Source of the DNA: Auanema rhodensis
Taxonomy: Eukaryota; Animalia; Nematoda
Direction of reading: 5' to 3'
Length of the DNA stretch: 64,000 nt
Assembly (NCBI GenBank): GCA_964057225.1
Contig: OZ059900.1
Location: forward strand, 930,001-994,000
Shown: positions 1-55,500 of the stretch, in pieces
How positions within the stretch are numbered: position 1 is the stretch's first letter
How the letters are laid out: every line of letters begins with the position of its first letter
Translations under genes and position numbers: made by a program
Notes under the pieces: generated by a model
What the model saw: only the letters and a program-made list of their open reading frames with translations
The model's database searches: none
What the model was told of the DNA's origin: nothing

Positions 1-3000
1 TTATTGGCTATAACAACAAAAGTCATCAATTAAACGCTAGTGATGTTTAAATACTGAATTTCGCTCAAATAGCATTACTACACTAAGTATGGTCGTTTTT
101 ATGCCTTTAACACCATATACTCACCGATTTTTGGTACAAAATCTGTAATACTTGTAAATTTCGATCATATTTGTTAAGATTCGAGAATCAAACACATAAT
201 ACACGAAATAAGTCTATTTTTACAAGTTTGCACTGATATTTATTCATTTTGATCAAAAAAGGTCGAAAATAGAAAGAATTTTTGAAATTTCCGAGTTTTG
301 AGTCCAATTTGGCTAAATCGCTCATATATATGATCAGAAGCATAGTTTTATTGTCTATGACAACAAAAATCATCAATTAAACGCTAGTGATGTTTAAATA
401 CTGATTTTCGCTCAAATAGCATTACTACACTAAGTATGGTCGTTTTTATGCCTTTAACACCATATACTCACCGATTTTTGGTACAAAATCTGTAATACTC
501 GTAAATTTTGATCATATTCGTTAAGATTTGAGAATCAAACATACAATACAAAAAATCAGTCTATTTTTATGAGCTTGCACTGATATATATTCATTTTGAT
601 CAAAAAAGGTCGAAAATAGAAAGAATTTTTGAAATTTCCGAGTTTTGAGTCTAATTTGGCTAAATCGCTCATATATATGATCAAAAGCATAGTTTTACTG
701 TCTATGATAACAAAAGTCTTCAAATATACACTAATAATGATTAAATCACTGAATTTCAGTCAAATAGCATTACTACACTAAGTATGGTCGTTTTTATGCC
801 TTTAACACCATATACTCACCGATTTTTGGTACAAAATCTGTAATACTTGTAAATTTTGATCATATTTGTTAAGATTCGAGAATCAAACACATAATACACA
901 AAATAAGTCTATTTTTACAAGTTTGCACTGATATTTATTCATTTTGATCAAAAAAGGTCGAAAATAGAAAGAATTTTTGAAGTTTCCGAGTTTTGAGTCC
1001 AATTTGGCTAAATCGCTCATATATAAGATCAAAAGCATAGTTTTATTGTCTATAACAACAAAAGTCATCAATTAAACGCTAGTGATGTTTAAATACTGAA
1101 TTTCGCTCAAATAGCATTACTACACTAAGTATGGTCGTTTTTATGCCTTTAACACCATATACTCACCGATTTTTGGTACAAAATCTGTAATACTCGTAAA
1201 TTTTGATCATATTCGTTAAGATTTGAGAATCAAACATACAATACAAAAAATCAGTCTATTTTTATGAGCTTGCACTGATATATATTCATTTTGATCAAAA
1301 AAGGTCGAAAATAGAAAGAATTTTTGAAATTTCCGAGTTTTGAGTCTAATTTGGCTAAATCGCTCATATATATGATCAAAAGCATAGTTTTACTGTCTAT
1401 GATAACAAAAGTCTTCAAATATACACTAATAATGATTAAATCACTGAATTTCAGTCAAATAGCATTACTACACTAAGTATGGTCGTTTTTATGCCTTTAA
1501 CACCATATACTCACCGATTTTTGGTACAAAATCTGTAATACTTGTAAATTTTGATCATATTTGTTAAGATTCGAGAATCAAACACATAATACACGAAATA
1601 AGTCTATTTTTACAAGTTTGCACTGATATTTATTCATTTTGATCAAAAAAGGTCGAAAATAGAAAGAATTTTTGAAGTTTCCGAGTTTTGAGTCCAATTT
1701 GGCTAAATCGCTCATATATAAGATCAAAAGCATAGTTTTATTGTCTATAACAACAAAAGTCATCAATTAAACGCTAGTGATGTTTAAATACTGAATTTCG
1801 CTCAAATAGCATTACTACACTAAGTATGGTCGTTTTTATGCCTTTAACACCATATACTCACCGATTTTTGGTACAAAATCTGTAATACTCGTAAATTTTG
1901 ATCATATTCGTTAAGATTTGAGAATCAAACATACAATACAAAAAATCAGTCTATTTTTATGAGCTTGCACTGATATATATTCATTTTGATCAAAAAAGGT
2001 CGAAAATAGAAAGAATTTTTGAAATTTCCGAGTTTTGAGTCTAATTTGGCTAAATCGCTCATATATATGATCAAAAGCATAGTTTTACTGTCTATGATAA
2101 CAAAAGTCTTCAAATATACACTAATAATGATTAAATCACTGAATTTCAGTCAAATAGCATTACTACACTAAGTATGGTCGTTTTTATGCCTTTAACACCA
2201 TATACTCACCGATTTTTGGTACAAAATCTGTAATACTTGTAAATTTTGATCATATTTGTTAAGATTCGAGAATCAAACACATAATACACGAAATAAATCT
2301 ATTTTTACAAGTTTGCACTGATATTTATTCATTTTGATCAAAAAAGGTCGAAAATAGAAAGAATTTTTGAAATTTCCGAGTTTTGAGTCCAATTTGGCTA
2401 AATCGCTCATATATAAGATCAAAAGCATAGTTTTATTGTCTATAACAACAAAAGTCATCAATTAAACGCTAGTGATGTTTAAATACTGAATTTCGCTCAA
2501 ATAGCATTACTACACTAAGTATGGTCGTTTTTATGCCTTTAACACCATATACTCACCGATTTTTGGTACAAAATCTGTAATACTTGTAAATTTCGATCAT
2601 ATTTGTTAAGATTCGAGAATCAAACACATAATACACGAAATAAGTCTATTTTTACAAGTTTGCACTGATATTTATTCATTTTGATCAAAAAAGGTCGAAA
2701 ATAGAAAGAATTTTTGAAATTTCCGAGTTTTGAGTCCAATTTGGCTAAATCGCTCATATATATGATCAGAAGCATAGTTTTATTGTCTATGACAACAAAA
2801 ATCATCAATTAAACGCTAGTGATGTTTAAATACTGATTTTCGCTCAAATAGCATTACTACACTAAGTATGGTCGTTTTTATGCCTTTAACACCATATACT
2901 CACCGATTTTTGGTACAAAATCTGTAATACTCGTAAATTTTGATCATATTCGTTAAGATTTGAGAATCAAACATACAATACAAAAAATCAGTCTATTTTT

Positions 3001-9000: not shown

Positions 9001-12000
9001 AATCGCTCATATATATGATCAAAAGCATAGTTTTACTGTCTATGATAACAAAAGTCTTCAAATATACACTAATAATGATTAAATCACTGAATTTCAGTCA
9101 AATAGCATTACTACACTAAGTATGGTCGTTTTTATGCCTTTAACACCATATACTCACCGATTTTTGGTACAAAATCTGTAATACTTGTAAATTTTGATCA
9201 TATTTGTTAAGATTCGAGAATCAAACACATAATACACGAAATAAGTCTATTTTTACAAGTTTGCACTGATATTTATTCATTTTGATCAAAAAAGGTCGAA
9301 AATAGAAAGAATTTTTGAAATTTCCGAGTTTTGAGTCCAATTTGGCTAAATCGCTCATATATAAGATCAAAAGCATAGTTTTATTGTCTATAACAACAAA
9401 AGTCATCAATTAAACGCTAGTGATGTTTAAATACTGAATTTCGCTCAAATAGCATTACTACACTAAGTATGGTCGTTTTTATGCCTTTAACACCATATAC
9501 TCACCGATTTTTGGTACAAAATCTGTAATACTCGTAATTTTTGATCATATTCGTTAAGATTTGAGAATCAAACATACAATACAAAAAATCAGTCTATTTT
9601 TATGAGCTTGCACTGATATATATTCATTTTGATCAAAAAAGGTCGAAAATAGAAAGAATTTTTGAAATTTCCGAGTTTTGAGTCTAATTTGGCTAAATCG
9701 CTCATATATATGATCAAAAGCATAGTTTTACTGTCTATGATAACAAAAGTCTTCAAATATACACTAATAATGATTAAATCACTGAATTTCAGTCAAATAG
9801 CATTACTACACTAAGTATGGTCGTTTTTATGCCTTTAACACCATATACTCACCGATTTTTGGTACAAAATCTGTAATACTTGTAAATTTTGATCATATTT
9901 GTTAAGATTTGAGAATCAAACACATAATACACGAAATAAATCTATTTTTACAAGTTTGCACTGATATTTATTCATTTTGATCAAAAAAGGTCGAAAATAG
10001 AAAGAATTTTTGAAATTTCCGAGTTTTGAGTCCAATTTGGCTAAATCGCTCATATATATGATCAGAAGCATAGTTTTATTGTCTATGACAACAAAAATCA
10101 TCAATTAAACGCTAGTGATGTTTAAATACTGATTTTCGCTCAAATAGCATTACTACACTAAGTATGGTCGTTTTTATGCCTTTAACACCATATACTCACC
10201 GATTTTTGGTACAAAATCTGTAATACTCGTAAATTTTGATCATATTCGTTAAGATTTGAGAATCAAACATACAATACAAAAAATCAGTCTATTTTTATGA
10301 GCTTGCACTGATATATATTCATTTTGATCAAAAAAGGTCGAAAATAGAAAGAATTTTTGAAATTTCCGAGTTTTGAGTCTAATTTGGCTAAATCGCTCAT
10401 ATATATGATCAAAAGCATAGTTTTACTGTCTATGATAACAAAAGTCTTCAAATATACACTAATAATGATTAAATCACTGAATTTCAGTCAAATAGCATTA
10501 CTACACTAAGTATGGTCGTTTTTATGCCTTTAACACCATATACTCACCGATTTTTGGTACAAAATCTGTAATACTTGTAAATTTTGATCATATTTGTTAA
10601 GATTCGAGAATCAAACACATAATACACGAAATAAGTCTATTTTTACAAGTTTGCACTGATATTTATTCATTTTGATCAAAAAAGGTCGAAAATAGAAAGA
10701 ATTTTTGAAGTTTCCGAGTTTTGAGTCCAATTTGGCTAAATCGCTCATATATAAGATCAAAAGCATAGTTTTATTGTCTATAACAACAAAAGTCATCAAT
10801 TAAACGCTAGTGATGTTTAAATACTGAATTTCGCTCAAATAGCATTACTACACTAAGTATGGTCGTTTTTATGCCTTTAACACCATATACTCACCGATTT
10901 TTGGTACAAAATCTGTAATACTCGTAAATTTTGATCATATTCGTTAAGATTTGAGAATCAAACATACAATACAAAAAATCAGTCTATTTTTATGAGCTTG
11001 CACTGATATATATTCATTTTGATCAAAAAAGGTCGAAAATAGAAAGAATTTTTGAAATTTCCGAGTTTTGAGTCTAATTTGGCTAAATCGCTCATATATA
11101 TGATCAAAAGCATAGTTTTACTGTCTATGATAACAAAAGTCTTCAAATATACACTAATAATGATTAAATCACTGAATTTCAGTCAAATAGCATTACTACA
11201 CTAAGTATGGTCGTTTTTATGCCTTTAACACCATATACTCACCGATTTTTGGTACAAAATCTGTAATACTTGTAAATTTTGATCATATTTGTTAAGATTC
11301 GAGAATCAAACACATAATACACGAAATAAATCTATTTTTACAAGTTTGCACTGATATTTATTCATTTTGATCAAAAAAGGTCGAAAATAGAAAGAATTTT
11401 TGAAATTTCCGAGTTTTGAGTCCAATTTGGCTAAATCGCTCATATATAAGATCAAAAGCATAGTTTTATTGTCTATAACAACAAAAGTCATCAATTAAAC
11501 GCTAGTGATGTTTAAATACTGAATTTCGCTCAAATAGCATTACTACACTAAGTATGGTCGTTTTTATGCCTTTAACACCATATACTCACCGATTTTTGGT
11601 ACAAAATCTGTAATACTTGTAAATTTCGATCATATTTGTTAAGATTCGAGAATCAAACACATAATACACGAAATAAGTCTATTTTTACAAGTTTGCACTG
11701 ATATTTATTCATTTTGATCAAAAAAGGTCGAAAATAGAAAGAATTTTTGAAATTTCCGAGTTTTGAGTCCAATTTGGCTAAATCGCTCATATATATGATC
11801 AAAAGCATAGTTTTACTGTCTATGATAACAAAAGTCTTCAAATATACACTAATAATGATTAAATCACTGAATTTCAGTCAAATAGCATTACTACACTAAG
11901 TATGGTCGTTTTTATGCCTTTAACACCATATACTCACCGATTTTTGGTACAAAATCTGTAATACTTGTAAATTTTGATCATATTTGTTAAGATTCGAGAA

Positions 12001-15000
12001 TCAAACACATAATACACGAAATAAGTCTATTTTTACAAGTTTGCACTGATATTTATTCATTTTGATCAAAAAAGGTCGAAAATAGAAAGAATTTTTGAAA
12101 TTTCCGAGTTTTGAGTCCAATTTGGCTAAATCGCTCATATATAAGATCAAAAGCATAGTTTTATTGTCTATAACAACAAAAGTCATCAATTAAACGCTAG
12201 TGATGTTTAAATACTGAATTTCGCTCAAATAGCATTACTACACTAAGTATGGTCGTTTTTATGCCTTTAACACCATATACTCACCGATTTTTGGTACAAA
12301 ATCTGTAATACTTGTAAATTTCGATCATATTTGTTAAGATTCGAGAATCAAACACATAATACACGAAATAAGTCTATTTTTACAAGTTTGCACTGATATT
12401 TATTCATTTTGATCAAAAAAGGTCGAAAATAGAAAGAATTTTTGAAATTTCCGAGTTTTGAGTCCAATTTGGCTAAATCGCTCATATATATGATCAGAAG
12501 CATAGTTTTATTGTCTATGACAACAAAAATCATCAATTAAACGCTAGTGATGTTTAAATACTGATTTTCGCTCAAATAGCATTACTACACTAAGTATGGT
12601 CGTTTTTATGCCTTTAACACCATATACTCACCGATTTTTGGTACAAAATCTGTAATACTCGTAATTTTTGATCATATTCGTTAAGATTTGAGAATCAAAC
12701 ATACAATACAAAAAATCAGTCTATTTTTATGAGCTTGCACTGATATATATTCATTTTGATCAAAAAAGGTCGAAAATAGAAAGAATTTTTGAAATTTCCG
12801 AGTTTTGAGTCTAATTTGGCTAAATCGCTCATATATATGATCAAAAGCATAGTTTTACTGTCTATGATAACAAAAGTCTTCAAATATACACTAATAATGA
12901 TTAAATCACTGAATTTCAGTCAAATAGCATTACTACACTAAGTATGGTCGTTTTTATGCCTTTAACACCATATACTCACCGATTTTTGGTACAAAATCTG
13001 TAATACTTGTAAATTTTGATCATATTTGTTAAGATTCGAGAATCAAACACATAATACACGAAATAAGTCTATTTTTACAAGTTTGCACTGATATATATTC
13101 ATTTTGATCAAAAAAGGTCGAAAATAGAAAGAATTTTTGAAGTTTCCGAGTTTTGAGTCCAATTTGGCTAAATCGCTCATATATAAGATCAAAAGCATAG
13201 TTTTATTGTCTATAACAACAAAAGTCATCAATTAAACGCTAGTGATGTTTAAATACTGATTTTCGCTCAAATAGCATTACTACACTAAGTATGGTCGTTT
13301 TTATGCCTTTAACACCATATACTCACCGATTTTTGGTACAAAATCTGTAATACTTGTAAATTTCGATCATATTTGTTAAGATTCGAGAATCAAACACATA
13401 ATACACGAAATAAGTCTATTTTTACAAGTTTGCACTGATATTTATTCATTTTGATCAAAAAAGGTCGAAAATAGAAAGAATTTTTGAAATTTCCGAGTTT
13501 TGAGTCCAATTTGGCTAAATCGCTCATATATATGATCAGAAGCATAGTTTTATTGTCTATGACAACAAAAATCATCAATTAAACGCTAGTGATGTTTAAA
13601 TACTGATTTTCGCTCAAATAGCATTACTACACTAAGTATGGTCGTTTTTATGCCTTTAACACCATATACTCACCGATTTTTGGTACAAAATCTGTAATAC
13701 TCGTAAATTTTGATCATATTCGTTAAGATTTGAGAATCAAACATACAATACAAAAAATCAGTCGATTTTTATGAGCTTGCACTGATATATATTCATTTTG
13801 ATCAAAAAAGGTCGAAAATAGAAAGAATTTTTGAAATTTCCGAGTTTTGAGTCTAATTTGGCTAAATCGCTCATATATATGATCAAAAGCATAGTTTTAC
13901 TGTCTATGATAACAAAAGTCTTCAAATATACACTAATAATGATTAAATCACTGAATTTCAGTCAAATAGCATTACTACACTAAGTATGGTCGTTTTTATG
14001 CCTTTAACACCATATACTCACCGATTTTTGGTACAAAATCTGTAATACTTGTAAATTTTGATCATATTTGTTAAGATTCGAGAATCAAACACATAATACA
14101 CGAAATAAGTCTATTTTTACAAGTTTGCACTGATATTTATTCATTTTGATCAAAAAAGGTCGAAAATAGAAAGAATTTTTGAAGTTTCCGAGTTTTGAGT
14201 CCAATTTGGCTAAATCGCTCATATATAAGATCAAAAGCATAGTTTTATTGTCTATAACAACAAAAGTCATCAATTAAACGCTAGTGATGTTTAAATACTG
14301 AATTTCGCTCAAATAGCATTACTACACTAAGTATGGTCGTTTTTATGCCTTTAACACCATATACTCACCGATTTTTGGTACAAAATCTGTAATACTCGTA
14401 AATTTTGATCATATTCGTTAAGATTTGAGAATCAAACATACAATACAAAAAATCAGTCTATTTTTATGAGCTTGCACTGATATATATTCATTTTGATCAA
14501 AAAAGGTCGAAAATAGAAAGAATTTTTGAAATTTCCGAGTTTTGAGTCTAATTTGGCTAAATCGCTCATATATATGATCAAAAGCATAGTTTTACTGTCT
14601 ATGATAACAAAAGTCTTCAAATATACACTAATAATGATTAAATCACTGAATTTCAGTCAAATAGCATTACTACACTAAGTATGGTCGTTTTTATGCCTTT
14701 AACACCATATACTCACCGATTTTTGGTACAAAATCTGTAATACTTGTAAATTTTGATCATATTTGTTAAGATTCGAGAATCAAACACATAATACACGAAA
14801 TAAGTCTATTTTTACAAGTTTGCACTGATATTTATTCATTTTGATCAAAAAAGGTCGAAAATAGAAAGAATTTTTGAAGTTTCCGAGTTTTGAGTCCAAT
14901 TTGGCTAAATCGCTCATATATAAGATCAAAAGCATAGTTTTATTGTCTATAACAACAAAAGTCATCAATTGAACGCTAGTGATGTTTAAATACTGAATTT

Positions 15001-18000
15001 CGCTCAAATAGCATTACTACACTAAGTATGGTCGTTTTTATGCCTTTAACACCATATACTCACCGATTTTTGGTACAAAATCTGTAATACTCGTAAATTT
15101 TGATCATATTCGTTAAGATTTGAGAATCAAACATACAATACAAAAAATCAGTCTATTTTTATGAGCTTGCACTGATATATATTCATTTTGATCAAAAAAG
15201 GTCGAAAATAGAAAGAATTTTTGAAATTTCCGAGTTTTGAGTCTAATTTGGCTAAATCGCTCATATATATGATCAAAAGCAAAGTTTTACTGTCTATGAT
15301 AACAAAAGTCTTCAAATATACACTAATAATGATTAAATCACTGAATTTCAGTCAAATAGCATTACTACACTAAGTATGGTCGTTTTTATGCCTTTAACAC
15401 CATATACTCACCGATTTTTGGTACAAAATCTGTAATACTTGTAAATTTTGATCATATTTGTTAAGATTCGAGAATCAAACACATAATACACGAAATAAGT
15501 CTATTTTTACAAGTTTGCACTGATATTTATTCATTTTGATCAAAAAAGGTCGAAAATAGAAAGAATTTTTGAAATTTCCGAGTTTTGAGTCCAATTTGGC
15601 TAAATCGCTCATATATATGATCAGAAGCATAGTTTTATTGTCTATGACAACAAAAATCATCAATTAAACGCTAGTGATGTTTAAATACTGATTTTCGCTC
15701 AAATAGCATTACTACACTAAGTATGGTCGTTTTTATGCCTTTAACACCATATACTCACCGATTTTTGGTACAAAATCTGTAATACTCGTAAATTTTGATC
15801 ATATTCGTTAAGATTTGAGAATCAAACATACAATACAAAAAATCAGTCTATTTTTATGAGCTTGCACTGATATATATTCATTTTGATCAAAAAAGGTCGA
15901 AAATAGAAAGAATTTTTGAAATTTCCGAGTTTTGAGTCCAATTTGGCTAAATCGCTCATATATAAGATCAAAAGCATAGTTTTATTGTCTATAACAACAA
16001 AAGTCATCAATTGAACGCTAGTGATGTTTAAATACTGAATTTCGCTCAAATAGCATTACTACACTAAGTATGGTCGTTTTTATGCCTTTAACACCATATA
16101 CTCACCGATTTTTGGTACAAAATCTGTAATACTCGTAAATTTTGATCATATTCGTTAAGATTTGAGAATCAAACATACAATACAAAAAATCAGTCTATTT
16201 TTATGAGCTTGCACTGATATATATTCATTTTGATCAAAAAAGGTCGAAAATAGAAAGAATTTTTGAAATTTCCGAGTTTTGAGTCTAATTTGGCTAAATC
16301 GCTCATATATATGATCAAAAGCAAAGTTTTACTGTCTATGATAACAAAAGTCTTCAAATATACACTAATAATGATTAAATCACTGAATTTCAGTCAAATA
16401 GCATTACTACACTAAGTATGGTCGTTTTTATGCCTTTAACACCATATACTCACCGATTTTTGGTACAAAATCTGTAATACTTGTAAATTTTGATCATATT
16501 TGTTAAGATTCGAGAATCAAACACATAATACACGAAATAAGTCTATTTTTACAAGTTTGCACTGATATTTATTCATTTTGATCAAAAAAGGTCGAAAATA
16601 GAAAGAATTTTTGAAATTTCCGAGTTTTGAGTCCAATTTGGCTAAATCGCTCATATATAAGATCAAAAGCATAGTTTTATTGTCTATAACAACAAAAGTC
16701 ATCAATTAAACGCTAGTGATGTTTAAATACTGAATTTCGCTCAAATAGCATTACTACACTAAGTATGGTCGTTTTTATGCCTTTAACACCATATACTCAC
16801 CGATTTTTGGTACAAAATCTGTAATACTTGTAAATTTCGATCATATTTGTTAAGATTCGAGAATCAAACACATAATACACGAAATAAGTCTATTTTTACA
16901 AGTTTGCACTGATATTTATTCATTTTGATCAAAAAAGGTCGAAAATAGAAAGAATTTTTGAAATTTCCGAGTTTTGAGTCCAATTTGGCTAAATCGCTCA
17001 TATATATGATCAGAAGCATAGTTTTATTGTCTATGACAACAAAAATCATCAATTAAACGCTAGTGATGTTTAAATACTGATTTTCGCTCAAATAGCATTA
17101 CTACACTAAGTATGGTCGTTTTTATGCCTTTAACACCATATACTCACCGATTTTTGGTACAAAATCTGTAATACTCGTAAATTTTGATCATATTCGTTAA
17201 GATTTGAGAATCAAACATACAATACAAAAAATCAGTCTATTTTTATGAGCTTGCACTGATATATATTCATTTTGATCAAAAAAGGTCGAAAATAGAAAGA
17301 ATTTTTGAAATTTCCGAGTTTTGAGTCTAATTTGGCTAAATCGCTCATATATATGATCAAAAGCATAGTTTTACTGTCTATGATAACAAAAGTCTTCAAA
17401 TATACACTAATAATGATTAAATCACTGAATTTCAGTCAAATAGCATTACTACACTAAGTATGGTCGTTTTTATGCCTTTAACACCATATACTCACCGATT
17501 TTTGGTACAAAATCTGTAATACTTGTAAATTTTGATCATATTTGTTAAGATTCGAGAATCAAACACATAATACACGAAATAAGTCTATTTTTACAAGTTT
17601 GCACTGATATTTATTCATTTTGATCAAAAAAGGTCGAAAATAGAAAGAATTTTTGAAGTTTCCGAGTTTTGAGTCCAATTTGGCTAAATCGCTCATATAT
17701 AAGATCAAAAGCATAGTTTTATTGTCTATAACAACAAAAGTCATCAATTAAACGCTAGTGATGTTTAAATACTGAATTTCGCTCAAATAGCATTACTACA
17801 CTAAGTATGGTCGTTTTTATGCCTTTAACACCATATACTCACCGATTTTTGGTACAAAATCTGTAATACTCGTAAATTTTGATCATATTCGTTAAGATTT
17901 GAGAATCAAACATACAATACAAAAAATCAGTCTATTTTTATGAGCTTGCACTGATATATATTCATTTTGATCAAAAAAGGTCGAAAATAGAAAGAATTTT

Positions 18001-18457
18001 TGAAATTTCCGAGTTTTGAGTCTAATTTGGCTAAATCGCTCATATATATGATCAAAAGCATAGTTTTACTGTCTATGATAACAAAAGTCTTCAAATATAC
18101 ACTAATAATGATTAAATCACTGAATTTCAGTCAAATAGCATTACTACACTAAGTATGGTCGTTTTTATGCCTTTAACACCATATACTCACCGATTTTTGG
18201 TACAAAATCTGTAATACTTGTAAATTTTGATCATATTTGTTAAGATTCGAGAATCAAACACATAATACACGAAATAAGTCTATTTTTACAAGTTTGCACT
18301 GATATTTATTCATTTTGATCAAAAAAGGTCGAAAATAGAAAGAATTTTTGAAATTTCCGAGTTTTGAGTCCAATTTGGCTAAATCGCTCATATATAAGAT
18401 CAAAAGCATAGTTTTATTGTCTATAACAACAAAAGTCATCAATTAAACGCTAGTGAT
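1..18457 (+). repeat. Homogeneous satellite domain, part 1: monomer types A (347 bp), B (348 bp), C (347 bp) in variable higher-order repeats
   Basis: A carries gatcagaagc/tatgacaacaaaaatc; B carries aaacatacaatacaaaaaatcag/aaatatacactaataatgattaaatcac; C carries atataagatc/tataacaacaaaagtc. A-type starts at 2620, 4357, 6094 (period 1737 = ABCBC); 188 to 2620 is 2432 (ABCBCBC). Confidence 0.95.
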
Positions 18458-18477
18458 AGTGATTTTTAATCGGTGAG
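18451..18477. other. Inversion junction (forward to inverted) with tagtga-tagtga duplication; identical copy at 23166-23192
   Basis: Reads tagtgatagtgatttttaatcggtgag. Confidence 0.92.
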
Positions 18478-21173
18478 TATATGGTGTTAAAGGCATAAAA
18501 ACGACCATACTTAGTGTAGTAATGCTATTTGAGCGAAAATCAGTATTTAAACATCACTAGCGTTTAATTGATGATTTTTGTTGTCATAGACAATAAAACT
18601 ATGCTTCTGATCATATATATGAGCGATTTAGCCAAATTAGACTCAAAACTCGGAAATTTCAAAAATTCTTTCTATTTTCGACCTTTTTTGATCAAAATGA
18701 ATAAATATCAGTGCAAACTCATAAAAATAGACTTATTTCGTGTATTATGTGTTTGATTCTCGAATCTTAACAAATATGATCAAAATTTACAAGTATTACA
18801 GATTTTGTACCAAAAATCGGTGAGTATATGGTGTTAAAGGCATAAAAACGACCATACTTAGTGTAGTAATGCTATTTGAGCGAAATTTAGTGATTTAAAC
18901 ATTATTAGTGTTTAATTAATGACTTTTGTTGTCATAGACAATAAAACTATGCTTCTGATCATATATATGAGCGATTTAGCCAAATTAGACTCAAAACTCG
19001 TAAATTTCAAAAATTCTTTCTATTTTCGACCTTTTTTGATCAAAATGAATATATATCAGTGCAAGCTCATAAAAATAGACTGATTTTGTGTACTGTATGT
19101 TTGATTCTCAAATCTTAACGAATATGATCAAAATTTACAAGTATTACAGATTTTGTACCAAAAATCGGTGAGTATATGGTGTTAAAGGCATAAAAACGAC
19201 CATACTTAGTGTAGTAATGCTATTTGAGCGAAATTCAGTATTAAAACATCACTAGCGTTTAATTGAAGACTTTTGTTGTTATAGACAATAGAACTATGCT
19301 TTTGATCATATATATGAGCGATTTAGCCAAATTGGACTCAAAACTCGGAAACTTCAAAAATTCTTTCTATTTTCGACCTTTTTTGATCAAAATGAATAAA
19401 TATCAGTGCAAACTTGTAAAAATAGACTTATTTCGTGTATTATGTGTTTGATTCTCGAATCTTAACAAATATGATCAAAATTTACAAGTATTACAGATTT
19501 TGTACCAAAAATCGGTGAGTATATGGTGTTAAAGGCATAAAAACGACCATACTTAGTGTAGTAATGCTATTTGACTGAAATTCAGTGATTTAATCATTAT
19601 TAGTGTATATTTGAAGACTTTTGTTATCATAGACAGTAAAACTATGCTTTTGATCATATATATGAGCGATTTAGCCAAATTAGACTCAAAACTCGGAAAT
19701 TTCAAAAATTCTTTCTATTTTCGACCTTTTTTGATCAAAATGAATATATATCAGTGCAAGCTCATAAAAATAGACTGATTTTTTGTATTGTATGTTTGAT
19801 TCTCAAATCTTAACGAATATGATCAAAATTTACGAGTATTACAGATTTTGTACCAAAAATCGGTGAGTATATGGTGTTAAAGGCATAAAAACGACCATAC
19901 TTAGTGTAGTAATGCTATTTGAGCGAAAATCAGTATTTAAACATCACTAGCGTTTAATTGATGATTTTTGTTGTCATAGACAATAAAACTATGCTTCTGA
20001 TCATATATATGAGCGATTTAGCCAAATTGGACTCAAAACTCGGAAATTTCAAAAATTCTTTCTATTTTCGACCTTTTTTGATCAAAATGAATAAATATCA
20101 GTGCAAACTTGTAAAAATAGACTTATTTCGTGTATTATGTGTTTGATTCTCGAATCTTAACAAATATGATCGAAATTTACAAGTATTACAGATTTTGTAC
20201 CAAAAATCGGTGAGTATATGGTGTTAAAGGCATAAAAACGACCATACTTAGTGTAGTAATGCTATTTGAGCGAAATTCAGTATTTAAACATCACTAGCGT
20301 TTAATTGATGACTTTTGTTGTTATAGACAATAAAACTATGCTTTTGATCTTATATATGAGCGATTTAGCCAAATTGGACTCAAAACTCGGAAATTTCAAA
20401 AATTCTTTCTATTTTCGACCTTTTTTGATCAAAATGAATAAATATCAGTGCAAACTTGTAAAAATAGACTTATTTCGTGTATTATGTGTTTGATTCTCGA
20501 ATCTTAACAAATATGATCAAAATTTACAAGTATTACAGATTTTGTACCAAAAATCGGTGAGTATATGGTGTTAAAGGCATAAAAACGACCATACTTAGTG
20601 TAGTAATGCTATTTGACTGAAATTCAGTGATTTAATCATTATTAGTGTATATTTGAAGACTTTTGTTATCATAGACAGTAAAACTATGCTTTTGATCATA
20701 TATATGAGCGATTTAGCCCAATTGGACTCAAAACTCGGAAAATTCAAAAATTCTTTCTATTTTCGACCTTTTTTGATCAAAATGAATAAATATCAGTGCA
20801 AACTCGTGAAAATAAACTCATTTCGTGTATTGTGTGTTTGATTCTCGAATCTTAACGAATATGATCGAAATTTACGAGTATCACAGATTTTGTATTTGTA
20901 CCGATTTACTAGCGTTTAATTGATGATTTTTGTTGTCATAGACAATAAAACTATGCTTCTGATCATATATATGAGCGATTTAGCCAAATTAGACTCAAAA
21001 CTAGGAAATTTCAAAAATTCTTTCTATTTTCGACCTTTTTTGATCAAAATGAATAAATATCAGTGCAAACTCATGAAAATAGACTTATTTCGTGTATTAT
21101 GTGTTTGATTCTCGAATCTTAACGAATATGATCAAAATTTACAAGTATTACAGATTTTGTACCAAAAATCGGT
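18468..21173 (-). repeat. Inverted satellite block 1 (7 monomers plus one truncated monomer)
   Basis: Sequence becomes the reverse complement of the monomer at aatcggtgagtatatggtg (18468). The repeat ORF flips to + for 18568-21108, and orientation returns at ...aaaaatc|ggtacaaatacaaaatctg (about 21171). Confidence 0.97.
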
Positions 21174-23172
21174 ACAAATACAAAATCTGTGATACTCGTA
21201 AATTTCGATCATATTCGTTAAGATTCGAGAATCAAACACACAATACACGAAATGAGTTTATTTTCACGAGTTTGCACTGATATTTATTCATTTTGATCAA
21301 AAAAGGTCGAAAATAGAAAGAATTTTTGAATTTTCCGAGTTTTGAGTCCAATTTGGCTAAATCGCTCATATATAAGATCAAAAGCATAGTTTTATTGTCT
21401 ATAACAACAAAAGTCATCAATTAAACGCTAGTGATGTTTAAATACTGATTTTCGCTCAAATAGCATTACTACACTAAGTATGGTCGTTTTTATGCCTTTA
21501 ACACCATATACTCACCGATTTTTGGTACAAAATCTGTAATACTCGTAAATTTTGATCATATTCGTTAAGATTCGAGAATCAAACACATAATACACGAAAT
21601 AAGTCTATTTTTACAAGTTTGCACTGATATTTATTCATTTTGATCAAAAAAGGTCGAAAATAGAAAGAATTTTTGAAATTTCCGAGTTTTGAGTCCAATT
21701 TGGCTAAATCGCTCATATATATGATCAGAAGCATAGTTTTATTGTCTATGACAACAAAAATCATCAATTAAACGCTAGTGATGTTTAAATACTGATTTTC
21801 GCTCAAATAGCATTACTACACTAAGTATGGTCGTTTTTATGCCTTTAACACCATATACTCACCGATTTTTGGTACAAAATCTGTAATACTCGTAAATTTT
21901 GATCATATTCGTTAAGATTTGAGAATCAAACATACAATACAAAAAATCAGTCTATTTTTATGAGCTTGCACTGATATATATTCATTTTGATCAAAAAAGG
22001 TCGAAAATAGAAAGAATTTTTGAAATTTCCGAGTTTTGAGTCTAATTTGGCTAAATCGCTCATATATATGATCAAAAGCATAGTTTTACTGTCTATGATA
22101 ACAAAAGTCTTCAAATATACACTAATAATGATTAAATCACTGAATTTCAGTCAAATAGCATTACTACACTAAGTATGGTCGTTTTTATGCCTTTAACACC
22201 ATATACTCACCGATTTTTGGTACAAAATCTGTAATACTTGTAAATTTTGATCATATTTGTTAAGATTCGAGAATCAAACACATAATACACGAAATAAGTC
22301 TATTTTTACAAGTTTGCACTGATATTTATTCATTTTGATCAAAAAAGGTCGAAAATAGAAAGAATTTTTGAAGTTTCCGAGTTTTGAGTCCAATTTGGCT
22401 AAATCGCTCATATATAAGATCAAAAGCATAGTTTTATTGTCTATAACAACAAAAGTCATCAATTAAACGCTAGTGATGTTTAAATACTGAATTTCGCTCA
22501 AATAGCATTACTACACTAAGTATGGTCGTTTTTATGCCTTTAACACCATATACTCACCGATTTTTGGTACAAAATCTGTAATACTCGTAAATTTTGATCA
22601 TATTCGTTAAGATTTGAGAATCAAACATACAATACAAAAAATCAGTCTATTTTTATGAGCTTGCACTGATATATATTCATTTTGATCAAAAAAGGTCGAA
22701 AATAGAAAGAATTTTTGAAATTTCCGAGTTTTGAGTCTAATTTGGCTAAATCGCTCATATATATGATCAAAAGCATAGTTTTACTGTCTATGATAACAAA
22801 AGTCTTCAAATATACACTAATAATGATTAAATCACTGAATTTCAGTCAAATAGCATTACTACACTAAGTATGGTCGTTTTTATGCCTTTAACACCATATA
22901 CTCACCGATTTTTGGTACAAAATCTGTAATACTTGTAAATTTTGATCATATTTGTTAAGATTCGAGAATCAAACACATAATACACGAAATAAGTCTATTT
23001 TTACAAGTTTGCACTGATATTTATTCATTTTGATCAAAAAAGGTCGAAAATAGAAAGAATTTTTGAAATTTCCGAGTTTTGAGTCCAATTTGGCTAAATC
23101 GCTCATATATAAGATCAAAAGCATAGTTTTATTGTCTATAACAACAAAAGTCATCAATTAAACGCTAGTGAT
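21171..23172 (+). repeat. Forward-orientation satellite between inverted blocks 1 and 2 (hybrid monomer, then A-B-C-B-C)
   Basis: Repeat ORFs on - at 21232, 21579, 22274, 22969. Confidence 0.93.
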
Positions 23173-23182
23173 AGTGATTTTT

Positions 23183-25888
23183 AATCGGTGAGTATATGGT
23201 GTTAAAGGCATAAAAACGACCATACTTAGTGTAGTAATGCTATTTGAGCGAAAATCAGTATTTAAACATCACTAGCGTTTAATTGATGATTTTTGTTGTC
23301 ATAGACAATAAAACTATGCTTCTGATCATATATATGAGCGATTTAGCCAAATTAGACTCAAAACTCGGAAATTTCAAAAATTCTTTCTATTTTCGACCTT
23401 TTTTGATCAAAATGAATAAATATCAGTGCAAACTCATAAAAATAGACTTATTTCGTGTATTATGTGTTTGATTCTCGAATCTTAACAAATATGATCAAAA
23501 TTTACAAGTATTACAGATTTTGTACCAAAAATCGGTGAGTATATGGTGTTAAAGGCATAAAAACGACCATACTTAGTGTAGTAATGCTATTTGAGCGAAA
23601 TTTAGTGATTTAAACATTATTAGTGTTTAATTAATGACTTTTGTTGTCATAGACAATAAAACTATGCTTCTGATCATATATATGAGCGATTTAGCCAAAT
23701 TAGACTCAAAACTCGTAAATTTCAAAAATTCTTTCTATTTTCGACCTTTTTTGATCAAAATGAATATATATCAGTGCAAGCTCATAAAAATAGACTGATT
23801 TTGTGTACTGTATGTTTGATTCTCAAATCTTAACGAATATGATCAAAATTTACAAGTATTACAGATTTTGTACCAAAAATCGGTGAGTATATGGTGTTAA
23901 AGGCATAAAAACGACCATACTTAGTGTAGTAATGCTATTTGAGCGAAATTCAGTATTAAAACATCACTAGCGTTTAATTGAAGACTTTTGTTGTTATAGA
24001 CAATAGAACTATGCTTTTGATCATATATATGAGCGATTTAGCCAAATTGGACTCAAAACTCGGAAACTTCAAAAATTCTTTCTATTTTCGACCTTTTTTG
24101 ATCAAAATGAATAAATATCAGTGCAAACTTGTAAAAATAGACTTATTTCGTGTATTATGTGTTTGATTCTCGAATCTTAACAAATATGATCAAAATTTAC
24201 AAGTATTACAGATTTTGTACCAAAAATCGGTGAGTATATGGTGTTAAAGGCATAAAAACGACCATACTTAGTGTAGTAATGCTATTTGACTGAAATTCAG
24301 TGATTTAATCATTATTAGTGTATATTTGAAGACTTTTGTTATCATAGACAGTAAAACTATGCTTTTGATCATATATATGAGCGATTTAGCCAAATTAGAC
24401 TCAAAACTCGGAAATTTCAAAAATTCTTTCTATTTTCGACCTTTTTTGATCAAAATGAATATATATCAGTGCAAGCTCATAAAAATAGACTGATTTTTTG
24501 TATTGTATGTTTGATTCTCAAATCTTAACGAATATGATCAAAATTTACGAGTATTACAGATTTTGTACCAAAAATCGGTGAGTATATGGTGTTAAAGGCA
24601 TAAAAACGACCATACTTAGTGTAGTAATGCTATTTGAGCGAAAATCAGTATTTAAACATCACTAGCGTTTAATTGATGATTTTTGTTGTCATAGACAATA
24701 AAACTATGCTTCTGATCATATATATGAGCGATTTAGCCAAATTGGACTCAAAACTCGGAAATTTCAAAAATTCTTTCTATTTTCGACCTTTTTTGATCAA
24801 AATGAATAAATATCAGTGCAAACTTGTAAAAATAGACTTATTTCGTGTATTATGTGTTTGATTCTCGAATCTTAACAAATATGATCGAAATTTACAAGTA
24901 TTACAGATTTTGTACCAAAAATCGGTGAGTATATGGTGTTAAAGGCATAAAAACGACCATACTTAGTGTAGTAATGCTATTTGAGCGAAATTCAGTATTT
25001 AAACATCACTAGCGTTTAATTGATGACTTTTGTTGTTATAGACAATAAAACTATGCTTTTGATCTTATATATGAGCGATTTAGCCAAATTGGACTCAAAA
25101 CTCGGAAATTTCAAAAATTCTTTCTATTTTCGACCTTTTTTGATCAAAATGAATAAATATCAGTGCAAACTTGTAAAAATAGACTTATTTCGTGTATTAT
25201 GTGTTTGATTCTCGAATCTTAACAAATATGATCAAAATTTACAAGTATTACAGATTTTGTACCAAAAATCGGTGAGTATATGGTGTTAAAGGCATAAAAA
25301 CGACCATACTTAGTGTAGTAATGCTATTTGACTGAAATTCAGTGATTTAATCATTATTAGTGTATATTTGAAGACTTTTGTTATCATAGACAGTAAAACT
25401 ATGCTTTTGATCATATATATGAGCGATTTAGCCCAATTGGACTCAAAACTCGGAAAATTCAAAAATTCTTTCTATTTTCGACCTTTTTTGATCAAAATGA
25501 ATAAATATCAGTGCAAACTCGTGAAAATAAACTCATTTCGTGTATTGTGTGTTTGATTCTCGAATCTTAACGAATATGATCGAAATTTACGAGTATCACA
25601 GATTTTGTATTTGTACCGATTTACTAGCGTTTAATTGATGATTTTTGTTGTCATAGACAATAAAACTATGCTTCTGATCATATATATGAGCGATTTAGCC
25701 AAATTAGACTCAAAACTAGGAAATTTCAAAAATTCTTTCTATTTTCGACCTTTTTTGATCAAAATGAATAAATATCAGTGCAAACTCATGAAAATAGACT
25801 TATTTCGTGTATTATGTGTTTGATTCTCGAATCTTAACGAATATGATCAAAATTTACAAGTATTACAGATTTTGTACCAAAAATCGGT
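23183..25888 (-). repeat. Inverted satellite block 2, a copy of block 1 offset by 4715 bp
   Basis: Every ORF coordinate and translation equals block 1 plus 4715 (18568/23283, 19263/23978, 20653/25368, 20920/25635); the junction sequences are identical. Confidence 0.97.
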
Positions 25889-49800: not shown

Positions 49801-50179
49801 TAGCATTACTACACTAAGTATGGTCGTTTTTATGCCTTTAACACCATATACTCACCGATTTTTGGTACAAAATCTGTAATACTTGTAAATTTTGATCATA
49901 TTTGTTAAGATTCGAGAATCAAACACATAATACACGAAATAAGTCTATTTTTACAAGTTTGCACTGATATTTATTCATTTTGATCAAAAAAGGTCGAAAA
50001 TAGAAAGAATTTTTGAAATTTCCGAGTTTTGAGTCCAATTTGGCTAAATCGCTCATATATAAGATCAAAAGCATAGTTTTATTGTCTATAACAACAAAAG
50101 TCATCAATTAAACGCTAGTGATGTTTAAATACTGAATTTCGCTCAAATAGCATTACTACACTAAGTATGGTCGTTTTTA
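25886..50179 (+). repeat. Homogeneous satellite domain, part 2 (A/B/C monomers, dimer/pentamer/heptamer higher-order repeats)
   Basis: Same three diagnostic haplotypes as part 1; A starts at 36369, 38106, 39843 (period 1737). Confidence 0.95.
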
Positions 50180-50225
50180 ATCGGTGAGTATATGGTGTTA
50201 AAGGCATAAAAACGAAAACATCACT
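50168..50225. other. Inversion junction (forward to inverted) followed by a 44-bp deletion in the inverted arm
   Basis: Reads tggtcgtttttaatcggtgag...aaaaacga|aaacatcac; ccatacttagtgtagtaatgctatttgagcgaaaatcagtattt is missing. Confidence 0.92.
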
Positions 50226-52569
50226 AGCGTTTAATTGATGACTTTTGTTGTTATAGACAATAAAACTATGCTTTTGATCTTATATATGAGCGATTTAGCC
50301 AAATTAGACTCAAAACTCGGAAATTTCAAAAATTCTTTCTATTTTCGACCTTTTTTGATCAAAATGAATAAATATCAGTGCAAACTCATAAAAATAGACT
50401 TATTTCGTGTATTATGTGTTTGATTCTCGAATCTTAACGAATATGATCAAAATTTACAAGTATTACAGATTTTGTACCAAAAATCGGTGAGTATATGGTG
50501 TTAAAGGCATAAAAACCACCATACTTAGTGTAGTAATGCTATTTGAGCGAAATTTAGTGATTTAAACATTATTAGTGTTTAATTAATGACTTTTGTTGTC
50601 ATAGACAATAAAACTATGCTTCTGATCATATATATGAGCGATTTAGCCAAATTAGACTCAAAACTCGTAAATTTCAAAAATTCTTTCTATTTTCGACCTT
50701 TTTTGATCAAAATGAATATATATCAGTGCAAGCTCATAAAAATAGACTGATTTTGTGTACTGTATGTTTGATTCTCAAATCTTAACGAATATGATCAAAA
50801 TTTACAAGTATTACAGATTTTGTACCAAAAATCGGTGAGTATATGGTGTTAAAGGCATAAAAACGACCATACTTAGTGTAGTAATGCTATTTGAGCGAAA
50901 TTCAGTATTAAAACATCACTAGCGTTTAATTGAAGACTTTTGTTGTTATAGACAATAGAACTATGCTTTTGATCATATATATGAGCGATTTAGCCAAATT
51001 GGACTCAAAACTCGGAAATTTCAAAAATTCTTTCTATTTTCGACCTTTTTTGATCAAAATGAATAAATATCAGTGCAAACTTATAAAAATAGACTTATTT
51101 CGTGTATTATGTGTTTGATTCTCAAATCTTAACGAATATGATCGAAATTTACAAGTATTACAGATTTTGTACCAAAAATCGGTGAGTATATGGTGTTAAA
51201 GGCATAAAAACGACCATACTTAGTGTAGTAATGCTATTTGAGTGAAATTCAGTGATTTAATCATTACTAGTGTATATTTGAAGACTTTTGTTATCATAGA
51301 CAGTAAAACTATGCTTTTGATCATATATATGAGCGATTTAGCCCAATTGGACTCAAAACTCGGAAAATTCAAAAATTCTTTCTATTTTCGACCTTTTTTG
51401 ATCAAAATGAATAAATATCAGTGCAAACTCGTGAAAATAAACTCATTTCGTGTATTGTGTGTTTGATTCTCGAATCTTAACGAATATGATCGAAATTTAC
51501 GAGTATCACAGATTTTGTACCAAAAATCGGTGAGTATATGGTGTTGAAGGTATAAAAACGACCATACTTAGTGTAGTAATGCTATTTGAGCGAAAATCAG
51601 TATTTAAACATCATTAGTGTTTAATTAATGACTTTTGTTGTCATAGACAATAAAACTATGCTTCTGATCATATATATGAGCGATTTAGCCAAATTAGACT
51701 CAAAACTCGTAAATTTCAAAAATTCTTTCTATTTTCGACCTTTTTTGATCAAAATGAATATATATCAGTGCAAGCTCATAAAAATAGACTGATTTTGTGT
51801 ACTGTATGTTTGATTCTCAAATCTTAACGAATATGATCAAAATTTACAAGTATTACAGATTTTGTACCAAAAATCGGTGAGTATATGGTGTTAAAGGCAT
51901 AAAAACGACCATACTTAGTGTAGTAATGCTATTTGAGCGAAATTCAGTATTAAAACATCACTAGCGTTTAATTGAAGACTTTTGTTGTTATAGACAATAG
52001 AACTATGCTTTTGATCATATATATGAGCGATTTAGCCAAATTGGACTCAAAACTCGGAAATTTCAAAAATTCTTTCTATTTTCGACCTTTTTTGATCAAA
52101 ATGAATAAATATCAGTGCAAACTTATAAAAATAGACTTATTTCGTGTATTATGTGTTTGATTCTCAAATCTTAACGAATATGATCGAAATTTACAAGTAT
52201 TACAGATTTTGTACCAAAAATCGGTGAGTATATGGTGTTAAAGGCATAAAAACGACCATACTTAGTGTAGTAATGCTATTTGAGTGAAATTCAGTGATTT
52301 AATCATTACTAGTGTATATTTGAAGACTTTTGTTATCATAGACAGTAAAACTATGCTTTTGATCATATATATGAGCGATTTAGCCCAATTGGACTCAAAA
52401 CTCGGAAAATTCAAAAATTCTTTCTATTTTCGACCTTTTTTGATCAAAATGAATAAATATCAGTGCAAACTCGTGAAAATAAACTCATTTCGTGTATTGT
52501 GTGTTTGATTCTCGAATCTTAACGAATATGATCGAAATTTACGAGTATCACAGATTTTGTATTTGTACC
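50179..52569 (-). repeat. Inverted satellite block 3 (7 monomers of diverged-domain type) at the domain boundary
   Basis: Switch at ggtcgttttta/atcggtgag (50179) and return at tttgtacc/gatttttggtac (about 52567-52569). ORFs on + for 50235-52508. Confidence 0.97.
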
Positions 52570-52590
52570 GATTTTTGGTACAAAATCTGT
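52551..52590. other. Inversion junction (inverted to forward): fold-back hairpin with 7-nt loop and tttgta-tttgta duplication
   Basis: Reads cagattttgta-tttgtacc-gattttt-ggtacaaa-atctgt. Its reverse complement occurs at 21151-21189 and 25866-25904; a truncated same-strand copy occurs at 20883-20907 and 25598-25622. Confidence 0.92.
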
Positions 52591-55500
52591 AATACTTGTA
52601 AATTTTGATCATATTCGTTAAGATTCGAGAATCAAACACATAATACACGAAATAAGTCTATTTTTATGAGTTTGCACTGATATTTATTCATTTTGATCAA
52701 AAAAGGTCGAAAATAGAAAGAATTTTTGAAATTTCCTAGTTTTGAGTCTAATTTGGCTAAATCGCTCATATATATGATCAGAAGCATAGTTTTATTGTCT
52801 ATGACAACAAAAATCATCAATTAAACGCTAGTGATGTTTAAATACTGATTTTCGCTCAAATAGCATTACTAGACTAAGTATGGTCGTTTTTATGCCTTTA
52901 ACACCATATACTCACCGATTTTTGGTACAAAATCTGTGATACTCGTAAATTTCGATCATATTCGTTAAGATTCGAGAATCAAACACACAATACACGAAAT
53001 GAGTTTATTTTCACGAGTTTGCACTGATATTTATTCATTTTGATCAAAAAAGGTCGAAAATAGAAAGAATTTTTGAATTTTCCGAGTTTTGAGTCCAATT
53101 GGGCTAAATCGCTCATATATATGATCAAAAGCATAGTTTTACTGTCTATGATAACAAAAGTCTTCAAATATACACTAGTAATGATTAAATCACTGAATTT
53201 CACTCAAATAGCATTACTACACTAAGTATGGTCGTTTTTATGCCTTTAACACCATATACTCACCGATTTTTGGTACAAAATCTGTAATACTTGTAAATTT
53301 CGATCATATTCGTTAAGATTTGAGAATCAAACACATAATACACGAAATAAGTCTATTTTTATAAGTTTGCACTGATATTTATTCATTTTGATCAAAAAAG
53401 GTCGAAAATAGAAAGAATTTTTGAAATTTCCGAGTTTTGAGTCCAATTTGGCTAAATCGCTCATATATATGATCAAAAGCATAGTTCTATTGTCTATAAC
53501 AACAAAAGTCTTCAATTAAACGCTAGTGATGTTTTAATACTGAATTTCGCTCAAATAGCATTACTACACTAAGTATGGTCGTTTTTATGCCTTTAACACC
53601 ATATACTCACCGATTTTTGGTACAAAATCTGTAATACTTGTAAATTTTGATCATATTCGTTAAGATTTGAGAATCAAACATACAGTACACAAAATCAGTC
53701 TATTTTTATGAGCTTGCACTGATATATATTCATTTTGATCAAAAAAGGTCGAAAATAGAAAGAATTTTTGAAATTTACGAGTTTTGAGTCTAATTTGGCT
53801 AAATCGCTCATATATATGATCAGAAGCATAGTTTTATTGTCTATGACAACAAAAGTCATTAATTAAACACTAATAATGTTTAAATCACTAAATTTCGCTC
53901 AAATAGCATTACTACACTAAGTATGGTGGTTTTTATGCCTTTAACACCATATACTCACCGATTTTTGGTACAAAATCTGTAATACTTGTAAATTTTGATC
54001 ATATTCGTTAAGATTCGAGAATCAAACACATAATACACGAAATAAGTCTATTTTTATGAGTTTGCACTGATATTTATTCATTTTGATCAAAAAAGGTCGA
54101 AAATAGAAAGAATTTTTGAAATTTCCGAGTTTTGAGTCTAATTTGGCTAAATCGCTCATATATATGATCAGAAGCATAGTTTTATTGTCTATGACAACAA
54201 AAATCATCAATTAAACGCTAGTGATGTTTAAATACTGATTTTCGCTCAAATAGCATTACTACACTAAGTATGGTCGTTTTTATGCCTTTAACACCATATA
54301 CTCACCGATTTTTGGTACAAAATCTGTAATACTTGTAAATTTTGATCATATTCGTTAAGATTTGAGAATCAAACATACAATACACAAAATCAGTCTATTT
54401 TTATGAGCTTGCACTGATATATATTCATTTTGATCAAAAAAGGTCGAAAATAGAAAGAATTTTTGAAATTTCCGAGTTTTGAGTCCAATTTGGCTAAATC
54501 GCTCATATATATGATCAAAAGCATAGTTTTATTGTCTATAACAACAAAAGTCATCAATTAAACGCTAGTGATGTTTTAATACTGAATTTCGCTCAAATAG
54601 CATTACTACACTAAGTATGGTCGTTTTTATGCCTTTAACACCATATACTCACCGATTTTTGGTACAAAATCTTTGATACTCGTAAATTTTGATCATATTC
54701 GGTGAGATTCGAGAATCAAACACTCAATACACGAAACAAGTTTATTTTGACGAGTTTGCACTGATATTTATTCATTTTGATCAAAAAAGGTCGAAAATAG
54801 AAAGATTTTTTGAAATTTACGAGTTTTGAGTCTAATTTGGCTAAATCGCTCATATATATGATCAGAAGCATAGTTTTATTGTCTATGACAACAAAAATCA
54901 TCAATTAAACGCTAGTGATGTTTAAATACTGATTTTCGCTCAAATAGCATTACTACACTAAGTATGGTCGTTTTTATGCCTTTAACACCATATACTCACC
55001 GATTTTTGGTACAAAATCTGTAATACTTGTAAATTTTGATCATATTCGTTAAGATTTGAGAATCAAACATACAATACACAAAATCAGTCTATGTTTATGA
55101 GCTTGCACTGATATATATTCATTTTGATCAAAAAAGGTCGAAAATAGAAAGAATTTTTGAAATTTCCGAGTTTTGAGTCTAATTTGGCTAAATCGCTCAT
55201 ATATATGATCAGAAGCATAGTTTTATTGTCTATGACAACAAAAATCATCAATTAAACGCTAGTGATGTTTAAATACTGATTTTCGCTCAAATAGCATTAC
55301 TACACTAAGTATGGTCGTTTTTATGCCTTTAACACCATATACTCACCGATTTTTGGTACAAAATCTGTAATACTTGTAAATTTTGATCATATTCGTTAAG
55401 ATTCGAGAATCAAACACATAATACACGAAATAAGTCTATTTTTACAAGTTTGCACTGATATTTATTCATTTTGATCAAAAAAGATCGAAAATAGAAAGAA

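Follow-up and report, generated by a model that had tools for sequence, protein, structure and literature searches.

A one-way mosaic of array alleles in an inverted satellite block of Auanema rhodensis

A satellite array with three inverted blocks

The window analysed here is a 64,000-nucleotide stretch of Auanema rhodensis contig OZ059900.1 (assembly GCA_964057225.1, positions 930,001 to 994,000 of the forward strand). The whole 64 kb consists of a single AT-rich satellite (28% GC) with a 347-bp monomer, and the satellite array runs past both ends of the window. The subject of this report is the first of three inverted blocks in this array, in which a stretch of 1291-1377 bp has been replaced by alleles of the array to its left. 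Orientation was called by mapping a reference monomer along the window, which yielded seven runs:

1-18457, plus strand: array run
18468-21173, minus strand: inverted block 1, in the order partial A (129..1), D, E, overwritten B-A-C-B, two deleted monomers of 226-267 bp, flipped right junction
21179-23172, plus strand: array run
23183-25888, minus strand: inverted block 2, an exact copy of block 1
25894-50179, plus strand: array run
50179-52561, minus strand: inverted block 3, D-E-F-G-E-F plus partial G, with its interior in the unconverted state
52567-64000, plus strand: array run

Monomer types were obtained by clustering 177 full monomers. The labels are our own; the types called A, B and C in the initial annotation of this stretch, which was made from the sequence alone, probably correspond to our C, A and B. 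A very homogeneous higher-order repeat (HOR) of five monomers, C-A-B-A-B, occupies positions 1-50179, and positions 52567-64000 hold a diverged sister family with types D to K, in which G-F-E-D recurs. The consensus sequences of the types differ at 8 positions for F/B (per 348 bp), 11 for E/A, 17 for E/C and 21 for G/A. Judging from contigs of public sequencing runs, the satellite is enormously abundant in the three organisms that these runs represent.

A one-way mosaic in inverted block 1

Blocks 1 and 3 align gaplessly at an offset of +31667, from about 18549 to 20905. The initial annotation had described them as colinear, and six full monomers indeed span 2085 bp in each. The order of these monomers is (D)(E)(B)(A)(C)(B) in block 1 and (D)(E)(F)(G)(E)(F) in block 3. 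The two blocks differ at 6 positions in 18549-19351, at 52 in 19352-20642 and at none in 20643-20905. All 52 interior differences are left-array alleles in block 1; 52 of 52 consecutive informative sites are converted. The tract and the segment that faces it across the left junction are as follows:

19309..20685 at most and 19352-20642 at least, minus strand: overwritten tract, four monomers of left-array type reading B-A-C-B from left to right on the plus strand
16325..17701, plus strand: mirror-position segment of the left flank, B-C-A-B; the nearest candidate donor, made of standard HOR variants without diverged-family alleles

Aligned with the reverse complement of 19309-20685, the segment 16325-17701 has 0/1377 mismatches (100%) at a coordinate sum of 37010. 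The mirror tract of ~1.38 kb that had been proposed at this sum is thus real, and its proposed limits also hold, the first mirror mismatches being found at 19308/17702 and 20686/16324. The allele at 17658 had been paired with position 19352, and GAAGTTTCC is present at both. Each end of the tract falls in a 43-bp interval within an F/B monomer pair, the most similar donor/recipient pairs, and the tract itself corresponds to the commonest B-C-A-B haplotype. The inner 756 bp of the arms (18553-19308), in contrast, differ from their mirror at 26 sites, with D/E-type monomers facing B/A-type ones. Mirror identity is 96.5% beside the junction and reaches 100% only from 850 bp outward. An origin-type fold-back, or a fold-back read chimera, should give perfect mirror identity from the junction outward. 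We rejected both, given that the perfect mirror starts 850 bp out and not at the junction; for an origin-type fold-back, it also counts that block 3 has the same two junctions.

Two smaller patches carry left-array alleles as well:

18772..18850, minus strand: second patch of block 1, in its D monomer, with 2 informative sites and a maximal extent of 18722-18879
50242..50280, minus strand: patch of block 3, with four derived sites, adjoining the left junction (J_L) and a 44-bp deletion

The former, also picked out in the initial annotation, exists but is tiny, as it comprises two consecutive informative sites, both with the allele of the mirror arm. Compared with block 3 and with the plus-strand source D monomer at 53834-54181, positions 18772 and 18850 are derived, and the unconverted sites 18721 and 18880 bound the patch. 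As for the block 3 patch, all four of its derived sites match the block's own mirror-left partner. Taken over the three patches, 58 of 58 derived sites match the in-register mirror partner. Blocks 1 and 3 differ in these left-array-allele patches only, and elsewhere they have 0 differences in about 1,066 bp. Because no difference lies outside the patches, patchwise copying has outpaced point mutation since blocks 1 and 3 separated.

The differences were polarised against the plus-strand source monomers of the right array:

52792..54310, plus strand: source segment G-F-E-D-A(1-129) of the diverged right array, which the inverted blocks reproduce as reverse complements

Taken in reverse complement, 50264-51653 (D-E-F-G, block 3) differs from plus-strand 52792-54181 (G-F-E-D) at 9/1390 positions, and the junction-proximal partial monomer of block 1 (18468-18596) is identical to plus-strand 54182-54310 (0/129 differences). 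The E, F and partial G of block 3 are 100% identical to right-flank copies. Since the inverted blocks are reverse complements of 52792-54310, F-G-E-F as seen in block 3 is the ancestral interior and B-A-C-B the derived one, and block 1 is a displaced copy whose interior has changed. At all 52 sites of the main tract, it is block 1 that carries the derived allele.

The direction of the transfer follows from the left flank. Composed of standard HOR variants that recur unchanged in distant copies, it holds no reciprocal product, and monomer typing detected no diverged-family (F/G/E) monomer in plus orientation anywhere in 1-50179. The transfer was one-way, from the homogeneous array into the inverted block of the diverged family, and this mosaic bears out the initial proposal that alleles had moved in that direction between the subfamilies. 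Given a one-way transfer, the arms cannot have swapped sequence reciprocally through two crossovers, and gene conversion or repair of the synthesis-dependent strand annealing (SDSA) type is indicated instead. We regard it as very probable that non-reciprocal homologous copying of some kind, by gene conversion or SDSA, produced the tract.

We also considered that the polarity might be reversed, block 3 having been overwritten from the right flank, or that the two arms exchanged sequence reciprocally through two crossovers (inversion toggling). In favour of such scenarios, block 3 has been remodelled too, as its E and F are 100% identical to the right flank and it contains an exact 908-bp internal repeat, and the right junction of block 1 is the flipped isomer of that of block 3, so arm-to-arm exchange does occur at this locus. 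However, both ends of block 1 belong to the diverged family (partial A, D and E on one side, partial G on the other), and block 3 reproduces G-F-E-D-A colinearly, in reverse, over its entire length, which makes an ancestral mosaic unparsimonious. A reciprocal swap further predicts F/G/E-type monomers in plus orientation at 16325-17701; their absence from 1-50179 led us to reject reciprocal exchange by double inversion. Altogether, we consider a reversed or reciprocal history highly improbable.

How block 1 came to lie where it does was also addressed through its flanks. In the left flanks of blocks 1 and 3, only the first two monomers are identical, and the third and fourth show differences of 2-3 bases. 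By monomer typing, the two long left flanks have strings of similar style that do not run colinearly, and for this reason a simple 27-kb tandem duplication was rejected as the origin of block 1.

Junctions, duplication and the candidate donors of the tract

Both junctions are common to blocks 1 and 3. At the left junctions, both minus arms start at monomer position about 129-131, with TTTTT directly followed by AATCGGTGAG. The plus arm of block 1 ends at 18457 and its minus arm starts at 18468, which leaves a 95-nt loop in register 37010:

18458..18552, no strand assigned: unpaired loop of J_L, register 37010, made of the 10-bp filler AGTGATTTTT and 85 bp of the minus arm (monomer positions 129 to 45)

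The left junctions have undergone independent small deletions. The minus arm of block 3 lacks 44 bp (monomer positions about 49-92), and the plus arm of block 1 lacks about 52 bp and has an AGTGAT duplication as filler (18458-18467). On the right, the block 1 junction is the flipped isomer of that of block 3: the reverse complement of 20908-21391 differs from 52349-52832 at 3/484 positions. Ahead of it lies an additional direct copy of the partial G monomer together with part of the loop (20682-20907), which equals the reverse complement of 21166-21391 with 2 differences. This arrangement suggests flipping of the palindrome centre or a second fold-back at the right junction of block 1. Both junctions lie on a short monomer dyad, GTACC..GGTAC, at positions about 121-137. 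Block 3 has its own peculiarity, an exact internal repeat of three monomers in which 50612-51519 equals 51654-52561 (908 bp, shift 1042). Its outer E-F-Gpartial matches 52926-53833 in reverse complement at 100%, with a displacement of one monomer from the register of the right junction, whereas the in-register partner differs at 13/213 positions.

Block 2 arose together with its flank, by duplication:

16849..21448, no strand assigned: first copy of an exact 4600-bp direct duplication; second copy at 21564-26163, period 4715

The duplication carries the whole plus arm as well as the inverted block, and the tract of block 2 is found at 24024-25400. As this tract reaches beyond the 1994-bp left arm that block 2 itself possesses, the overwrite is older than the duplication of 4715-bp period. 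The exchange zone (21449-21573) lies within a chimeric monomer and is a left/right mosaic, left-type at 21524 and right-type at 21544-21563, with a private base at 21449. Such a mosaic is what would be expected from an unequal crossover between misaligned plus-strand monomers.

The following sequence of events could account for the locus as a whole, and we lean slightly towards it: a copy of the block was placed upstream and was then converted from its mirror arm. At the array boundary, the opening monomers of the diverged array would first have been copied in inverted orientation, giving the 2.4-kb block 3. A copy of this inverted block, with both junctions included, would have been set 31.7 kb upstream within the homogeneous array as block 1. 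After its placement, homology-guided non-reciprocal copying would have replaced four of its monomers, probably through gene conversion, with a double-strand break repaired by SDSA. The inserted sequence would be that of the homogeneous array in inverted orientation, and its most likely template the nearest identical copy, 16325-17701, reached by intrachromatid pairing of the arms. Block 1 would later have been duplicated in tandem to give block 2.

The identity of the donor is the delicate part of this scheme. The initial annotation held that the inverted arm had been rewritten by its mirror partner through fold-back; its non-reciprocal overwrite by left-array alleles stands, and the choice of donor and the fold-back do not stand in the same way, since four other exact copies exist. 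Comparison of the tract with the rest of the array, of the kind the annotation had called for, returned the mirror as an exact match along with four plus-strand sites that are equally exact:

3818-5194, 31313-32689, 37567-38943 and 47295-48671, plus strand: other sites 100% identical to the tract

Still, no exact copy lies nearer than the mirror segment, and the other close B-C-A-B copies at 26450-27826, 12851-14227 and 11809-13185 carry 2-4 mismatches. To gauge the register, the junction was moved through the homogeneous arrays, in which 118 registers are possible. A B-C-A-B phase, as the tract requires, was obtained in 17/118 (14%) and exact identity in 5/118 (4%), the real one included. Homology by itself almost forces the HOR phase, because B-C-A-B alone, with its three-monomer spacing, sets B opposite both F monomers. 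On balance, we slightly favour the mirror arm as donor by in-register fold-back pairing, on evidence that is only suggestive.

Several observations weigh against this preference. The four equally exact plus-strand sites are joined by nine others off by 1-2 bases, within the window alone. In the tract, no variant is private to 16325-17701; the sole private variant nearby, at 16324, lies outside it. The register test is post hoc, and registers 37010 and 36663 could each pass as natural. Moreover, there is more of the array on either side of the window, and arrays in minus orientation elsewhere in the genome could act as donors in direct orientation. The small patches fit 55% and 39% of the array registers and add little on the donor; for that reason, we rejected them as independent register evidence, the patch of block 1 also being tied to the main tract by HOR periodicity. 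In addition, the structure is that of the assembly; the pieces listed from four public runs over 18300-21400 are fragments of contigs, 60-82 bp long, and no such piece covers the 45-78 bp required to mark either boundary. A better match elsewhere, which the initial annotation had named as a reason to doubt the mirror donor, was found to the extent that three of the exact sites run 33 bp further, to 20718. Because block 1 is identical to block 3 over 20643-20905, this extension is uninformative either way, and we discarded it both as a refutation and as support of a mirror donor.

Conversion-type copying might instead have drawn on a non-mirror donor, either another plus-strand B-C-A-B copy or a minus array acting in trans (on the sister chromatid, the homologue or another chromosome), the match in register then being coincidental. 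The four exact and nine near-exact copies in the window, the nearly forced HOR phase and the huge abundance of the satellite in the three organisms would all accommodate such a donor. Set against this are the chance of exact in-register identity, about 4%, the position of the mirror copy as the closest exact one, with 2-4 mismatches in the other close copies, and the small patch of block 3, which likewise matches its own mirror partner. We therefore see a donor other than the mirror arm as unlikely, if a serious contender.

An artefact of assembly or polishing was also envisaged, in which the interior of block 1 would have been filled from abundant array reads and the 4.7-kb duplicate would be a mis-join. 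The extremely repetitive nature of the region lends itself to such errors, and the exact 4600-bp duplicate and the exact 1377-bp tract resemble products of consensus errors. Nevertheless, the tract forms one clean block, is sharply delimited and has a genuine HOR haplotype. Polishing should convert the most array-like monomers first, yet E, with 11 differences from A, is untouched, and G, with 21, is wholly replaced. Unique junctions lie at most 3 kb on either side of the tract, such that ordinary long reads would anchor it, and the duplication has the mosaic exchange zone typical of unequal crossover. In our judgement, these features make an artefact improbable, and conversion from the mirror arm remains our preferred account.

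A further feature of the tract concerns its representation in the public runs. In all four of them, the contig word depth falls at least 100-fold at 19444-19547 and 20068-20171 relative to neighbouring bins. These stretches of HOR haplotype are apparently rare genome-wide, yet they are common in this array.

Meaning and comparison with known systems

As it stands, the locus illustrates known processes, namely gene conversion, unequal crossover and palindrome flipping. It is tempting to go further and speculate that inverted blocks are rewritten in register by hairpin-like pairing with the flanking arm, at a rate far above that of point mutation (58 sites in three patches versus 0 substitutions in about 1,066 bp), but we hold this idea to be doubtful. 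If it were true, inversion junctions would be conversion hot spots that leak alleles one way, from a homogeneous array into a diverged subfamily; subfamily boundaries would be gradually erased and long perfect dyads built. Orientation switches in satellite arrays are usually seen as barriers to homogenisation, and the locus offers a polarised counter-example. Within 64 kb, it brings together the converted copy, its unconverted paralogue and the array segment from which the inverted block derives, so that tract limits, direction and relative timing can be read directly. Should the in-register donor be confirmed, it would amount to sequence-level evidence that kilobase-scale satellite dyads pair in vivo, which bears on the hairpins and cruciforms proposed at centromeres.

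Among satellites, a close architectural parallel comes from Tribolium: in the passages searched, two accounts describe macro-dyad symmetries of satellite arrays, with multi-kb inverted subarrays whose inversion sites are conserved (PMC13081366, PMC12581902). The array analysed here likewise has multi-kb inverted subarrays, and conserved inversion junctions that recur as copies. In those passages, the Tribolium accounts deal with architecture and conserved inversion sites rather than with allele transfer from arm to arm (PMC13081366, PMC12581902), and the 347-bp satellite is not assigned to Tribolium. A literature search for a satellite of this monomer length and for four of its conserved 20-24-mers gave no match, nor did two Tribolium satellitome papers searched for the length. 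A phrase search of the literature for arm-to-arm gene conversion together with satellite returned only papers on sex chromosomes and ampliconic genes.

The initial annotation had drawn an analogy with primate Y-chromosome palindromes. Arm-to-arm gene conversion was reportedly described for palindromes P1-P8 of the primate Y by Rozen et al. in 2003, and it is also a theme of the palindromes of ape sex chromosomes. The present structure shares with these palindromes two inverted arms around a short spacer, non-reciprocal copying, putatively from the mirror position of the other arm, and a homology-bounded tract. In the primate Y palindromes, however, the arms are near-identical throughout, whereas in the present case 26 sites differ over the inner 756 bp, where the sequence is that of another subfamily. 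The arms are made of tandem satellite monomers, for which many out-of-register and distant donors are equally good. Furthermore, the transfer went one way, from array to inverted block, and affected three patches only, without sustained arm identity. The analogy is thus apt for the adjacent inverted arms and the non-reciprocal tract and loose otherwise, as the arms are not near-identical.

On chromosome XIV of Saccharomyces, inverted repeats are said to be recurrently homogenised, with flip/flop inversion. That system resembles ours in combining inverted repeats with conversion and crossover; in our array, the right junction of block 1 is flipped relative to block 3. Nevertheless, the yeast repeats belong to a gene family and flank a unique 24-kb segment, unlike the tandem satellite monomers of this array.

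Lastly, satellites are known to evolve in concert by gene conversion and unequal exchange (molecular drive), and the locus has much in common with that process. Variant monomers have been overwritten by the locally dominant HOR haplotype, both limits of the tract fall where the monomers are most alike, there have been more conversion events than point mutations, and the tandem duplication at 16849-26163 arose by unequal crossover. It departs from the usual picture in that the recipient is inverted relative to the array, so that inverted-repeat pairing or a minus-oriented donor elsewhere is needed, and in that the event crosses a subfamily boundary. The locus is a clean example of homogenisation of the gene-conversion type, and it fits ordinary satellite concerted evolution with an inverted recipient.

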